Sequence record: MN871441.1
Strand: one strand, 5' to 3'
DNA length: 64,000 nucleotides
The translations under genes were made by a program, and so were the position numbers. Under the pieces are notes generated by a model. It was not told the origin of the DNA. It made no database searches and saw nothing but the letters and a program-made list of their open reading frames with translations. This document shows positions 6,348 to 45,882 of this stretch, piece after piece. Every line of letters begins with the position of its first letter. The first letter of the stretch is position 1.

Positions 6348-6583
6348 TCTTCTACCTCAATCAAACAATCTTCTTCATCAGGATAGCAATTATCGGCATC
6401 GTTGGGCCACTGCACCCAAGTCCACCCCGGCTCAGTTGACCATTCAGATACTCTGTATTGTGGAACCGGAATAACAACACCAATTACATCAACAGGGTTC
6501 GTCTCCCCACCATGACCATCATATGCCCAANGGCTTTTTGGATCCAATTTTACTAAAGTGCCAATTTTAATATCTTTGTTCAT
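6344..6583 (-). CDS. hypothetical protein
   Basis: overlap-coupled ORF. Confidence 0.65.
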   Translation of the reverse strand: MNKDIKIGTLVKLDPKSXWAYDGHGGETNPVDVIGVVIPVPQYRVSEWSTEPGWTWVQWPNDADNCYPDEEDCLIEVEE

Positions 6584-8379: not shown

Positions 8380-9038
8380 ACAAGAACCTGTGCGGCAAGG
8401 ATCGCTGAATGGCGCTTTAACTTGGTTTCCAAAGATTCGAATTTATACCAATCAGTCCATCGTGTCATTTCTTTACTTCCAACAGTACCAGTAAACCAAT
8501 CTGTGATTAAAGGTGGATTATAAAATCCAGTGGAAATACTCATCCTAATNTTATGACAAAAGTAGAAAGTCGCGTAAAAGGTANTTTCTGAACCTAATTT
8601 CAAAGACCAGACTTTGGTTGCTAAAAAGAACTCAGTCATCTCAAAATGTGCATCTGGTACGAAGGATTTAATAAAATATTTCTTATGGTCGAATTCCACA
8701 TCAACCAATGTCTTGTAAAGGTCGGATGCTACTTCAACCAACTCGCTTAGGTTAACTTTCCAACAATGTCCGAGGTCAATTACCCCGATATATGCGGGTG
8801 TAATATTTTTGTTTAAAATATTGAGAATTCGCTTCCCAGAATCTGTTTGTGTGATGATAAAATCATAATCCCATAGACTGAAAATTGGAGCGCGGTTTAC
8901 TGATTTTAGTTTTGATTCTATCGCTCGAACGTAAGACGATTCATGGTTCATCATACTTTTGATACCAGCCATAGCAAGAGATAGACAGATCGGATAACCA
9001 AAATAGTCCGCAGTATCTTTATGNANTTGNGTGTACAT
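8376..9038 (-). CDS. hypothetical protein
   Basis: 220 aa ORF, start in N-rich block. Confidence 0.6.
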   Translation of the reverse strand: MYXQXHKDTADYFGYPICLSLAMAGIKSMMNHESSYVRAIESKLKSVNRAPIFSLWDYDFIITQTDSGKRILNILNKNITPAYIGVIDLGHCWKVNLSELVEVASDLYKTLVDVEFDHKKYFIKSFVPDAHFEMTEFFLATKVWSLKLGSEXTFYATFYFCHXIRMSISTGFYNPPLITDWFTGTVGSKEMTRWTDWYKFESLETKLKRHSAILAAQVLV

Positions 9039-9409
9039 TTTTATTCCTCGTCGTANANNGGTTCAACAANNANNGATTTNCCNTANTNNGTNAANCCNTN
9101 TTNGGTNCTATANACCATNTNNTTNAGATTNNNNTTTANCCAANNGGTTTTTTGTTCTGTGGTGTACANTCATCCCACNNNCTCATCNANNNAGTCANNA
9201 TNNCANTTCTGNANGTNATAAACNTCNACNGGTTTNTNGTATTTNNNTTCCATGNANGAAATGGACACGNNNANANCGAAGACTTATCATNNTNGGTTGG
9301 GANGATCCAGTTNTCNACNTCACCATNNTNCANNATTNAGNGNAACTATTAGGGTAACCGTGTNNACATNNNTTTTCATGNNATGNCTCCTNNTANNTTC
9401 TATANANNT

Positions 9410-41022: not shown

Positions 41023-41316
41023 TCAAAATTCTAAAAATCGATCAACCAATTTACCATTTTCATCACGAATACCACCCAACCCTTTATTGATCAGATGGAT
41101 ATCNCCAGTNTACTTANCAACNCTNTCATANTCNCGNTTATGACGNTTNTTCAACCANATTTCNTANTNNCCCNGTTCATNCTTATGAACATAGTANAAC
41201 CAACATTTCTTCTCACCNAGCTTGAACACACGACCCAATAACAGGGTAGAACCGTTGTCCATACCGTGGACGATATAATCACCGACCACAAGCTCATTAC
41301 CAAACATATCAACCAT
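41023..41316 (-). CDS. hypothetical protein
   Basis: GAGG RBS. Confidence 0.6.
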   Translation of the reverse strand: MVDMFGNELVVGDYIVHGMDNGSTLLLGRVFKXGEKKCWXYYVHKXEXXXXEXWLXXRHXXXYXXVXKXTXDIHLINKGLGGIRDENGKLVDRFLEF

Positions 41317-42429: not shown

Positions 42430-43623
42430 TTAGAACTCGTGAGTTACGTCTGAGATTACTTCATAAGTCCAAGTACGAAGTTTCGCATTGTCGTAATCAG
42501 TTGGGATAGCAACGACGTGGGCTGGGTTGATCTTAACCATCACAACCCGGTCATTCTCACAAGATGAATAGTATGGGATGTAGTGACGAGCAGCAGCATG
42601 AAGACCCGCAGCACAAGTATTGTTTCGGTCGTCATCTACCTCAAATGGCTCGACTCGTGGCTTAGAACCAATACTATTATCAAACGTGTGGGTGCGGATA
42701 TCCTTATAATCCTCGGTAACGCGCTTGTACGCTAGGAAATGACCATCGTTGGTGATTTTGATGTCACTATGAGTCAGGAAGTCAAAAAGCTCGTATACAG
42801 CCGCACGGCGCGGATTCTGTAACAGGTTTTTCAGGAAGGTAACCATATACTCAAACTCTTCCCCGGACGCCCACATATCAATGATTCTTCGGGTCATCGA
42901 TGTATCAAGAACAATATCACGATAGTAGAGTGTGTCGCCTTCAATCCGAATATCACCAGAAGAATAGGTTTTGATTGCTTCTTTGATAGAAATCAGGTTT
43001 ACCGCACCGACCACATCATTGTCGCGGATCAGGAGTTGAAACGCATCTTCAAACCGTGGGTGGGCTCGGTCTGCAACGTATGGGGTTCCATCAATGAAGC
43101 AGTTAATAAAGTCATAACTTGCATTCCAAGATACCACGGGGGTATGAACCGGTTCGATTATTTCCTTCAAATGGATTGTTTTATCCGACTTCTTCTGAAT
43201 TCCCTTATAGCGACGAACTACATCACCTACTGTTGAACGAGGGATACCAGTTTGACGGGAAATTTCGTTTTGGCTGATTCCGAGATTATGAAGTCGGATA
43301 ATTTTATCATCACGACTTTCTTCGACTTTATTTTCAGAATAATCATGTACATCAAATTGCAAATCGATTTTATTAGTCCCAACCATCAATTTAATCAATT
43401 CTTTAATTGTAAGGGCTTCCCATCCTTCAAGTACATCGAGATCGCCAAGATCTATATCAAGTTCTTCCTCGATATACATAACAAGTTCTACAACATCGAG
43501 ATCGTCTAGGTTGTAATATGCAAAAGTTCTGTTGTTGTCAAGTTCTTTTATTTTATAACCGGTTACATCGTAAATACCGCTACGAATCAATGCTTCAAGT
43601 TTTTCAATATGGATAGTTTCCAT
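42430..43623 (-). CDS. rIIB: RIIB protein with N-terminal acyl-carrier-protein-like domain
   Basis: HTH, FLKNLLQNP, LFDFL..DIKITNDGHFLAYKRV, CAAGLH, VKINPAHVVAIP.DY..KLR; residues 1-80 ACP-like. Confidence 0.92.
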   Translation of the reverse strand: METIHIEKLEALIRSGIYDVTGYKIKELDNNRTFAYYNLDDLDVVELVMYIEEELDIDLGDLDVLEGWEALTIKELIKLMVGTNKIDLQFDVHDYSENKVEESRDDKIIRLHNLGISQNEISRQTGIPRSTVGDVVRRYKGIQKKSDKTIHLKEIIEPVHTPVVSWNASYDFINCFIDGTPYVADRAHPRFEDAFQLLIRDNDVVGAVNLISIKEAIKTYSSGDIRIEGDTLYYRDIVLDTSMTRRIIDMWASGEEFEYMVTFLKNLLQNPRRAAVYELFDFLTHSDIKITNDGHFLAYKRVTEDYKDIRTHTFDNSIGSKPRVEPFEVDDDRNNTCAAGLHAAARHYIPYYSSCENDRVVMVKINPAHVVAIPTDYDNAKLRTWTYEVISDVTHEF

Positions 43624-43647
43624 TTTATTTCCTCATTAAAAAGGGGC

Positions 43648-45882
43648 TTACACCCCTTTGTAGTTTTCCATAATAAGTTTAGTTGCAAGTTCGAACTCTT
43701 CGTTTTTTACACAACTATAATTTTTCTTCAACCTAAGAATCGCACATTCCATGGGGAATTGCTTTTTCATTTCGTCATAAAAATTATGATATACATCATA
43801 CATACTCTGACGATGGTTTTCAACAACATCGGTATAAACTTGATATTCATGTTCAGTCAAATATTCTTGAGCATGAACATAAATATTACCAAGATCATGA
43901 TCCCAATCACCGGATTCCGAGATACCAAAATAGTCCTTCATTTCCCGAGTAATTTCCATATCGACCCTTGGCTTATCAGACCTATTGATATTCCAACCAA
44001 TTTTATTACCCTTTAAATTGTTATTGAGATATTCAACAAGTTTACCTTTGATCATTTCCTTTGTAATGAGAGTCAAATTCTCATTCATGTTAGCCCGTCG
44101 TTCAAGGGTTTTCGGAAATGCATACAACGTTGTATCAAACATCTCAGATAACCAACTTTGAAGTCCATCTGTAACTTCATGACCATCAACAACAATATAT
44201 TCGCCAGAACGAAGACCATACAGCCCACTAAGCTCGTGTACATCCTTGGCAAGGAAATTGCCAGTACTGCGATACCCTTTATTATAATAATGCGAGTTGT
44301 CTGGTTTGTAACGTGGAGTTTTAGCCCTATTCCGCTGTGCTTCTAAACGACGTTGGCGCTTCTCTTCTGCTTCTTTCTCTTCAATTTCTTGAACGTGCTT
44401 ATCATACAACTTCTCTACATGAAAAACATCGATATCGTCTTTGTGGTAACGCTTTGCAATCTGGATAAAGAGATTTCGAGTTACATTCTTGAAAGGTTTG
44501 CGAGAATAAGGGTAATCGCTCATAACAACAACCCGTTCATTAGGAATGATACCATACTTCATAAGAAGCTTGATCCGTACCTTCCACTTACCATCCATAT
44601 TAGACAGAAGGATTGGGAATGGATATCGCTTATTCTTTACTGACGGCATGAAATAGTCATTAAACTCGATTTTACGAGACGACCCGTAATATCTTGCACG
44701 TTCAAGATTCCAAACATTTCGCACCGCATTACTAAATGTATCGATATAAACGAAATTTTTGTTTTTATAACTGTAATCCACACAGAAATCTTTAAACAAA
44801 GACCATTCTTTCGAAGATGTAATACTTTCGTAGAAGAAGCGCCAATCTTGAAGAGACTTGCCGTTATGGTCAATAATCTTTGATACTTTGTTAAAGATAT
44901 GCTCACCAAAATCCATAGACAAAATAGCATGAATTTTACTTCGTGCATCCTTTCCATGTTCAGAAACCTTTTTATTGACTTCATCAATAACTTGGTCCGA
45001 TTGGGATTTAAAATAAGAATTCAGTGTATTCAGTGTGTGTTTATCAAGACTCAATTCTTCCCGGTTCGGGAGAGGATTGAGAGACCCAACAGGAAAATCG
45101 ATAAAGTTATATGAATTATTAAAGAATACCGAACAAACCTCATTTTCGTAAAGCTTTGCTGGGATCTTGTAAGAAACACCACCCATAACAGCATATACGC
45201 CATTATCCATGATGGAACCATAGTAACCAGATGACTTGTAGTTAGTCAACTCGAAATTCTGATTGATGATGTTTGGATAAAATCCATCTTTATCAAATGT
45301 GTGGTACACCACCCGAGCTTCATTCCGAACTTCGGTAATATCATCTTGATCGATAGGGATTACGATTTCGATACCTGTGGGCTCGTCTGACGGTTCTTCG
45401 AAGATGGGGACACACTTTGGTATACCGTTGTTCATGAAGATGCTATAGACGGTTTTGAGACCCTTACACCACGATGTTACAGTGAATGTTGTTGTGTAGC
45501 AGAACGGACTTTTAGAACCAAGACCAAATGCACCGATAAAATCGTCAGAATCTTCCTTGGTTGATGCAAAATATGTGGTGAACAAGTTGAAAATACCATC
45601 CTTGTCCATACCAATACCATAATCGCGGAGTCTCCATTGCAAATTAATATCAGACGGAAGCTCTACATCAAAATATTTCGGTGGGGTTCCACCAATCTTT
45701 TCCAATGCAATGTGACCATCGATTGCGTTACAGCTCAATTCACGAATGAAAGCTCGGATCTTGAATTTATAAAGCCCAGAACTAAGAATGGTATAAGCTT
45801 TTTCATCAAACTTCATACCAAAATCGCGGGACTCTTCCATAACAGTCCCAAATACAGGTTGTTTATTTGTAACAATTTTCAT
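43648..45882 (-). CDS. rIIA: RIIA protein (GHKL-type N-terminus)
   Basis: IRELSCNAIDGH, RDYGIGM, IGAFGLGSKSPFCY. Confidence 0.93.
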   Translation of the reverse strand: MKIVTNKQPVFGTVMEESRDFGMKFDEKAYTILSSGLYKFKIRAFIRELSCNAIDGHIALEKIGGTPPKYFDVELPSDINLQWRLRDYGIGMDKDGIFNLFTTYFASTKEDSDDFIGAFGLGSKSPFCYTTTFTVTSWCKGLKTVYSIFMNNGIPKCVPIFEEPSDEPTGIEIVIPIDQDDITEVRNEARVVYHTFDKDGFYPNIINQNFELTNYKSSGYYGSIMDNGVYAVMGGVSYKIPAKLYENEVCSVFFNNSYNFIDFPVGSLNPLPNREELSLDKHTLNTLNSYFKSQSDQVIDEVNKKVSEHGKDARSKIHAILSMDFGEHIFNKVSKIIDHNGKSLQDWRFFYESITSSKEWSLFKDFCVDYSYKNKNFVYIDTFSNAVRNVWNLERARYYGSSRKIEFNDYFMPSVKNKRYPFPILLSNMDGKWKVRIKLLMKYGIIPNERVVVMSDYPYSRKPFKNVTRNLFIQIAKRYHKDDIDVFHVEKLYDKHVQEIEEKEAEEKRQRRLEAQRNRAKTPRYKPDNSHYYNKGYRSTGNFLAKDVHELSGLYGLRSGEYIVVDGHEVTDGLQSWLSEMFDTTLYAFPKTLERRANMNENLTLITKEMIKGKLVEYLNNNLKGNKIGWNINRSDKPRVDMEITREMKDYFGISESGDWDHDLGNIYVHAQEYLTEHEYQVYTDVVENHRQSMYDVYHNFYDEMKKQFPMECAILRLKKNYSCVKNEEFELATKLIMENYKGV

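Follow-up and report, generated by a model that had tools for sequence, protein, structure and literature searches.

The RIIB protein of a T4-like Aeromonas phage begins with an accessory domain that is predicted to adopt the fold of an acyl carrier protein (ACP), with an aspartate at the position of the phosphopantetheine serine. The gene lies in a 64,000-nucleotide stretch of sequence record MN871441.1, referred to below as the window. The explanation towards which we lean is that this domain is a degenerate carrier module that would now serve RIIB as an acidic docking part.

The rIIB gene and its genomic context

The 100% identity of its rIIB to versions from Aeromonas phages indicates that the phage of the window is a Ceceduovirus-type T4-like Aeromonas phage (Straboviridae, Emmerichvirinae, ~230 kb). 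The 397-aa product was recognized as RIIB through phrog_609 (E 4.4e-106, residues 58-397), with further matches to phrog 3803, phrog 36818 and other RIIB families. It carries the conserved C-terminal RIIB core, for which PF26926 is precomputed in proteins of the ACP-bearing RIIB clade, and its gene lies directly downstream of rIIA. The upstream 744-aa ORF carries the RIIA annotation in phage AS-zj, and the surrounding genes form a T4-type early region (topoisomerase II large subunit, three small ORFs, rIIA, rIIB and an RNase H-fold exonuclease). Coordinates of all features are collected in Table 1.

The reading frame bears out what had been predicted from the letters alone. The start codon is preceded by a GAGG-type Shine-Dalgarno sequence, on the minus strand, an orientation that the original prediction left unstated. 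The frame then runs without a stop codon from the ACP-like N-terminus through the helix-turn-helix (HTH) into the RIIB core. Positions 42430-43623 contain 0 N. The window as a whole has 1051 N in 702 very short scattered runs from position 6531 on (e.g., 9024-9316 and ~41095-41240), and ORFs such as 41023-41316 (minus) translate with many X; rIIB is free of them.

Table 1. Positions of the features discussed, in the window and in related sequences.
Feature	Sequence	Position	Strand	Description
rIIB CDS	window	42430..43623	minus	397 aa + stop; order: ACP-like domain, linker, HTH, RIIB core
rIIA	window	43648..45882	minus	744 aa; directly upstream of rIIB, same orientation; phrog_612 RIIA, E 2.1e-162
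rIIA stop codon	window	43648-43650	minus	24-nt intergenic gap to the rIIB ATG
Shine-Dalgarno GAGGA	window	43630-43634	minus	ends 6 nt ahead of the rIIB ATG (43621-43623); read from sequence
Predicted ACP-like (PP-binding) domain	window	43369..43623	minus	RIIB residues 1-85; Pfam PF00550, PDB ACP matches, AF2
Predicted helix II, the ACP 'recognition helix'	window	43459..43503	minus	RIIB residues 41-55, DLDVVELVMYIEEEL; DSSP on AF2 model
Codon 41, GAT = Asp	window	43501..43503	minus	site of the phosphopantetheine serine in ACP
Helix-turn-helix	window	43198..43308	minus	RIIB residues 106-142; Pfam HTH_SB 7e-9, HTH_23 1.2e-4
RIIB core	window	42433..43146	minus	~residues 160-397; PF26926 Phage_T4_rIIB type
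AS-szw rIIB, 5' part	L018	101-580		aligned with window 43144-43623
P0021, fused RIIB	L012	5001-6206		42-kb metagenome contig
P0029, fused RIIB	L014	5001-6140		223-kb contig; N-terminal modules reversed relative to window RIIB
P0027, RIIB	L016	5001-6656		551 aa, in the same clade; N-terminal extension without Pfam match
P0005, free-standing	L006	8001-8267		32.6-kb contig: ThyX, HNH, M15 peptidase, many small ORFs
P0011, free-standing	L008	8001-8285		175-kb contig: TerC, TerD, vWA-TerF, NAMPT, PRTase genes
P0012, free-standing	L009	977-1219		serine-less, Ala
P0013, free-standing	L005	202-444		serine-less, Asp

Homology and predicted fold of the N-terminal domain

Several independent comparisons relate the N-terminus of RIIB to carrier proteins, as the original prediction had proposed. 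BLASTP aligned it with E. coli ACP at 21/54 identities (39%; pairwise E 2e-9) and placed Asp41, within residues 38-59 (NLDDLDVVELVMYIEEELDIDL), opposite the serine of the DSL motif. The Pfam PP-binding model (PF00550; gathering score 20.8) reached 24.1 bits with the full-length protein and 28.2 bits with residues 1-80 only. A phmmer search against PDB sequences retrieved E. coli ACP chains at E-values from 1.3e-5 to 9e-5, the best matches spanning query residues 5-63, and a profile built from the fused domains of the clade gave E. coli ACP 40 bits. The PHROG phage acyl carrier families phrog_5934 and phrog_4154 matched the domain at 3.6e-6 and 2e-4, respectively. The polyubiquitin rows that top the PDB phmmer table consist of summed sub-threshold repeats, and ubiquitin was dismissed.

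The best NCBIfam match was the equivalog model for the fatty acid synthesis (FAS) ACP, TIGR00517, at 28.7 bits against a cut-off of 70.45 bits. A score so far below the equivalog cut-off implies that the domain is related to AcpP and is not an AcpP. It is also part of the 397-aa RIIB rather than a free-standing protein of ~78 aa.

The fold was modeled for residues 1-95 with AF2 from a 22-row alignment of fused and free-standing relatives. This prediction reached a pLDDT of 84.7 and a pTM of 0.76; single-sequence AF2 of full-length RIIB gave a pLDDT of 34.5. The modeled helices (residues 6-21, 41-55 and 73-82) and the short helical turns at 63-70 reproduce the ACP topology, and helix II begins exactly at residue 41, the serine position of ACP. 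A Foldseek search of the PDB with this model returned acyl or peptidyl carrier proteins as all of its best 50 matches, as expected from the original prediction of an ACP fold. Target-normalised TM scores were mostly 0.64-0.78 (ranks 1-38 and most others), with a few weaker lower-ranked rows; rmsd was 2.1-3.0 Å over 71-82 columns for most matches, and the probability was 1.00 for the leading ones. The E-values were modest, ~1e-2, because the helical domain is so small (75 residues). The PDB matches include ACPs that are pure structural subunits of membrane complexes (MmpL5-AcpM, Emb-AcpM and the FtsHi motors). A library of predicted viral structures gave as its top match the N-terminal part of the 'lysis inhibitor' (RIIB) from phage 65.2, and phage carrier-domain proteins ranked next. 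Sequence matches and model together thus identify the RIIB N-terminus as a putative ACP-fold domain, with a match beyond chance.

The fusion is genuine and restricted to one RIIB clade

The fused gene recurs across independently assembled phage genomes. The rIIB ORF is 95.5-100% identical in 15 phage records, 7 of them at 100%; tblastn found it at 100% identity as the annotated rIIB of Aeromonas phages AS-zj, AS-sw, Asswx_1, AsSzw2 and Aszh-1, and at 95.5-99.5% as the rIIB of eight more isolates. More distant fused versions occur in phages 65, avDM6 and ZPAH1. Altogether, the fused open frame was found in 19 independent Aeromonas phage records, each time under an rIIB annotation, and also on the syntenic metagenome contigs that encode P0021 (L012), P0026 (L013) and P0029 (L014). 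In the fused loci, rIIB starts 0-24 nt from the rIIA stop, which therefore leaves no space for a separate upstream gene. The fusion is genuine and no assembly artefact, and the misassembly or stop/restart that would have undermined the original prediction was not seen in any of these records or contigs.

The relatives were collected through an exhaustive search of representative proteins with the domain and a search with the full-length protein. Word-indexed homologue searches with the domain alone returned the AS-szw protein only, or nothing, and a related-locus search with the single protein as query found only AS-zj and CC2. The exhaustive phmmer search, run with residues 1-95 against 1.84 billion representative proteins, gave 19 matches at E ≤ 1e-3, exactly one of which is an RIIB-type protein, of the phage 65 type. 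The fused-domain profile was positive in 10 of 63 RIIB homologues drawn from a collection of 5.8 billion proteins (window RIIB, P0001, P0021, P0022, P0023, P0002, P0024, P0026, P0028 and P0029), and the same profile search detected no ACP-like domain in the more than 50 other RIIBs. For instance, the RIIBs of Aeromonas phages 31 and 44RR2.8t lack the module and have an N-terminal HTH in its place. T4 RIIB (312 aa) begins at the HTH and is likewise not known to have the domain.

In a maximum-likelihood tree of the C-terminal core, all bearers fall into one clade together with P0027 (support 100/99), which fits a single acquisition. The distribution among the sequences surveyed is consistent with a domain that is confined to one small RIIB clade and has a single origin; this restriction indicates that it is not needed for general RIIB function. 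The bearing lineages are only ~50-58% identical overall, yet they have retained the domain. Pfam PP-binding scores of several fused members are 13.9-16.9 bits, under the cut-off, and the precomputed Pfam tables already put PF00550 on the ZPAH1 protein.

The rIIA-rIIB synteny is the same on four metagenome contigs (L012, L013, L014 and L016). On L016 the two genes are adjacent and the ACP-like domain of P0027 is not recognisable: the ACP-like profile found no match in its 240-residue N-terminal extension. The neighbours of P0027 include NMN transporter and R2K-type ATP-grasp genes. P0025 (305 aa) was rejected as a natural domain-less variant, because its gene is truncated by the contig end and the last part of the domain can still be read in the frame upstream.

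The cofactor-serine position varies within the clade

In the window, Asp41 (GAT, without Ns) stands in place of the conserved serine of the D-S-L motif, exactly where the original prediction had put it, and this copy is therefore unable to carry a serine-linked phosphopantetheine there. To our knowledge, Asp is not phosphopantetheinylated by the known serine chemistry of the AcpS and Sfp enzymes.

A survey of the relatives revealed several different residues at this position. It is Asp (GAT) in the window, CC2 and AS-szw, Gly in phage 65 and avDM6 (GGA) and in P0002, and Glu in ZPAH1 and P0029 (GAA), in P0026 (GAG) and in P0028. In P0021, which is 71% identical and sister to the window group, it is Ser (AGT). 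The residue is acidic in 6 of 9 aligned fused sequences, and the serine is missing in three of the four deep lineages. The expectation of a conserved Ser-to-Asp exchange among relatives thus failed, and the common feature of the clade, as far as these sequences indicate, is that the serine is dispensable rather than that a particular mimic residue is kept.

The serine of P0021 lies in the motif GLDSLDVVEL and has been either restored or retained. Among the fused members, P0021 alone would in principle be open to phosphopantetheinylation, and given its serine some members may be modified. The change from AGT to GAT takes two steps, with Gly (GGT) as a possible intermediate. Together with the lack of serine in three of four deep lineages, this makes it seem more economical that the ancestor had no serine and that P0021 gained one secondarily.

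Conservation and selection

To describe what has been kept, nine fused sequences from four lineages were scored at the sites that are acidic in helix II of E. coli ACP and in the loop after it. D43, E46, E52 and E53 are acidic in all nine, D40 and D58 in eight, E54 and D56 in seven, and D61 in six. The acidic helix II surface, to which the original prediction had pointed, appears almost invariant on this count and the best-conserved part of the domain; apart from the hydrophobic pattern, little is retained in helices I, III and IV. Across the fused sequences, the domain has a net charge of -10 to -16; that of E. coli ACP is -15. Some of the conservation of helix II has a structural cause, since in all carrier proteins this helix is the most conserved part and it also takes part in the packing of the fold.

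The dN/dS ratio over the domain is 0.11-0.25 (Nei-Gojobori, Ceceduovirus pairs), similar to that of the linker-HTH region and the core, which indicates a domain under purifying selection and not one in decay. The AS-szw protein shares 84% identity with the window RIIB over residues 1-95 and 85.2% over residues 1-88, against 95% overall, and dS is 0.11-0.25 over its first ~160 codons and 0.006 in the core. Diversifying selection on the AS-szw domain was rejected, as dS is also high there (0.25 versus 0.006 in the core) and dN/dS is 0.25. The high dS instead identifies the 5' ~160 codons as a recombination mosaic, whose breakpoint falls within rIIB where the N-terminal arm meets the core.

Module order and free-standing relatives

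The position of the module within RIIB is not fixed. In P0028 (67.9-kb contig) and P0029, the HTH comes first (residues 7-45), followed by the ACP-like module (~50-135) and the core. The reversed order indicates that the module is an independent bead on a variable N-terminal arm; in both layouts it adjoins the HTH.

The nearest free-standing relatives are proteins of 75-99 aa. Four of these lack the serine: P0005 (E), P0011 (A), P0012 (A) and P0013 (D), with lengths of 80-94 aa. The contigs of P0005 and P0011 look phage-like, and on neither is the gene adjacent to rII; the sequence around P0006, P0008, P0012 and P0013 is too short for gene context to be read. A tblastn search of P0005 and P0013 against 50,697 phage records returned no match. 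From these free-standing relatives on phage-like contigs, we infer that phage ACP-like genes were probably the source of the fused domain, rather than a recent capture of a host acpP. Serine-less ACP mimics may form a wider, recurrent class of phage genes.

Possible roles of the domain

The combination of a lost cofactor serine with a retained fold and acidic surface is best explained, on balance, by a general docking function: a degenerate ACP-fold module that has lost its carrier role and acts as an acidic docking part of RIIB. Under this explanation, the serine would have been replaced while purifying selection preserved the fold together with its strongly negative charge and the acidic face that helix II has in type II ACPs. 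The module would be a self-contained unit of the variable N-terminal arm, beside the HTH, and helix II would dock RIIB onto a basic surface of the ACP-binding type on another protein. Candidate partners are a host ACP client that accepts apo-ACP (an SMC protein of the MukB type, or PlsB), a defence protein, or a phage protein such as RIIA. The evidence fits a partner within the phage (RIIA or the neighbouring HTH) just as well as a host partner.

Published work narrows the list of host clients. SpoT and MukB had both been named as ACP-binding proteins in the original prediction. According to a review (PMC3896788), SpoT does not bind apo-ACP, which makes it a poor target for a serine-less domain; the ATPase of MukB is stimulated equally by apo- and holo-AcpP (PMC8602292), a precedent for ACP acting through binding alone. 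MukB thus stands, with PlsB, as a possible target. As for the defence side, RIIB counters RexAB and triggers or is sensed by the gasdermin and Tmn defences (PMC10312443, PMC13001434); Rex-exclusion protection and membrane association are known for T-even phages only (PMC10312443, PMC13001434).

A more specific, host-directed role is possible, and we regard it as rather unlikely. The domain would then be an apo-ACP decoy that competes with AcpP for, or tethers RIIB to, a cofactor-independent ACP-binding host or defence protein, such as a MukBEF-type SMC complex, the membrane acyltransferase PlsB or ACP-dependent envelope enzymes, so that a defence would be blocked or the physiology of the host altered. 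Three observations point in this direction: helix II and the net charge have stayed acidic in the manner of AcpP, MukB accepts apo-AcpP (PMC8602292), and RIIB both acts against defences and sets off membrane-associated ones (PMC10312443, PMC13001434). The free-standing serine-less ACP-like proteins on phage-like contigs fit a function in trans. Against such mimicry stand the identity of only 39% to E. coli ACP over 54 residues, the score far under the AcpP equivalog cut-off (28.7 versus 70.45 bits), the reported failure of SpoT, a proposed target, to bind apo-ACP, and the limitation of the domain to one small clade.

A broader form of the same idea would be that serine-less ACP-fold modules, RIIB-fused or free-standing, constitute a class of phage effectors that imitate apo-ACP and would seize or block ACP-using host proteins (MukBEF-type SMC complexes, PlsB, envelope enzymes) or defences built on them. 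This we consider speculative and doubtful.

Alternatively, the module could be an adaptor or regulator internal to the phage and unrelated to host ACP clients. Its partner would then be RIIA, the core of RIIB or the basic HTH beside it, which it might, for instance, cover as an autoinhibitory, nucleic-acid-like mask. This, too, is an unlikely reading. Its attraction lies in the position of the module beside the HTH in both the ACP-HTH-core and the HTH-ACP-core layout, in the constant adjacency of rIIA and rIIB, and in the general nature of RIIB N-terminal regions as variable accessory arms. The RIIA of the window (43651-45882, minus) has a charged Lys/Arg/Glu-rich segment at residues ~515-550, EIEEKEAEEKRQRRLEAQRNRAK, which is conserved in the RIIAs of the clade and loosely present in phage 31 too. 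This segment is a possible basic partner surface for the acidic domain. However, no RIIA feature was found that discriminates between phages with and without the module, and free-standing serine-less relatives exist without an adjacent rII gene.

Finally, a neutral, decaying leftover of an ACP gene that was once captured, or else a genuine carrier that is modified in part of the family, could be suspected from the varying serine position, the DSL of P0021 and the Pfam scores of 13.9-16.9 bits, but is very improbable given the dN/dS of 0.11-0.25, the retention of the domain across lineages only ~50-58% identical overall, the confident fold prediction (pLDDT 84.7), an Asp in the window that lies beyond the AcpS/Sfp serine chemistry known to us, and the lack of any transferase annotation in the 25 kb inspected around rIIB.

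Comparison with known systems

The rII locus is one of the oldest in molecular genetics, and rIIB of these phages is annotated solely as 'RIIB lysis inhibitor'. The literature search found no paper on a PP-binding or ACP-like domain in RIIB, nor on a phage-encoded ACP as an anti-defence protein. The precomputed PF00550 on the ZPAH1 protein indicates that the raw domain match is visible to automated pipelines; what is new here is an RIIB with an accessory degenerate carrier domain. An accessory domain that is under selection, has a recognisable ancestry and is built round a protein-recognition helix offers a concrete bait for the RIIB partner in Aeromonas phages. If a class of apo-ACP-mimicking effectors did exist, it would give an initial molecular lead to the cellular contacts of RIIB, and the free-standing serine-less relatives on phage-like contigs hint that cofactor-free ACP mimics may recur as a phage tool.

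With T4-type RIIBs (PF26926/phrog_609), the window protein shares the C-terminal core, the HTH and the location of its gene, just after rIIA and close to the gene for the topoisomerase II large subunit; unlike the others surveyed, it has the additional ACP-like module. That module resembles AcpP of type II FAS (PF00550, TIGR00517) in its predicted four-helix fold (target-normalised TM ~0.7, rmsd ~2.5-3 Å), and E. coli AcpP in the helix II motif LDxLDxVELVMxxEEE and in a domain net charge of ~-13. It differs from AcpP, a free 78-aa protein encoded in a fab cluster, in its Asp for the phosphopantetheine serine, its score of 28.7 against 70.45 bits, its fusion to RIIB and the short predicted beta strands that flank it at residues 2-5 and 86-89. 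The free-standing phage ACP-like proteins (phrog_5934, phrog_4154 and the 'carrier domain-containing proteins' of BFVD) match it in sequence and fold, but they are unfused, do not lie beside rII and in many cases keep the serine.

By analogy, the closest functional precedent for the docking explanation is the mACP of Plasmodium falciparum, which likewise has an ACP fold without the cofactor serine and acts purely by binding Isd11-Nfs1 (PMC8547962). In contrast to the RIIB domain, mACP is a free-standing protein of a eukaryotic organelle whose partner, from the LYR family, is known, and the kinship implied between the two is that of a shared superfamily only.
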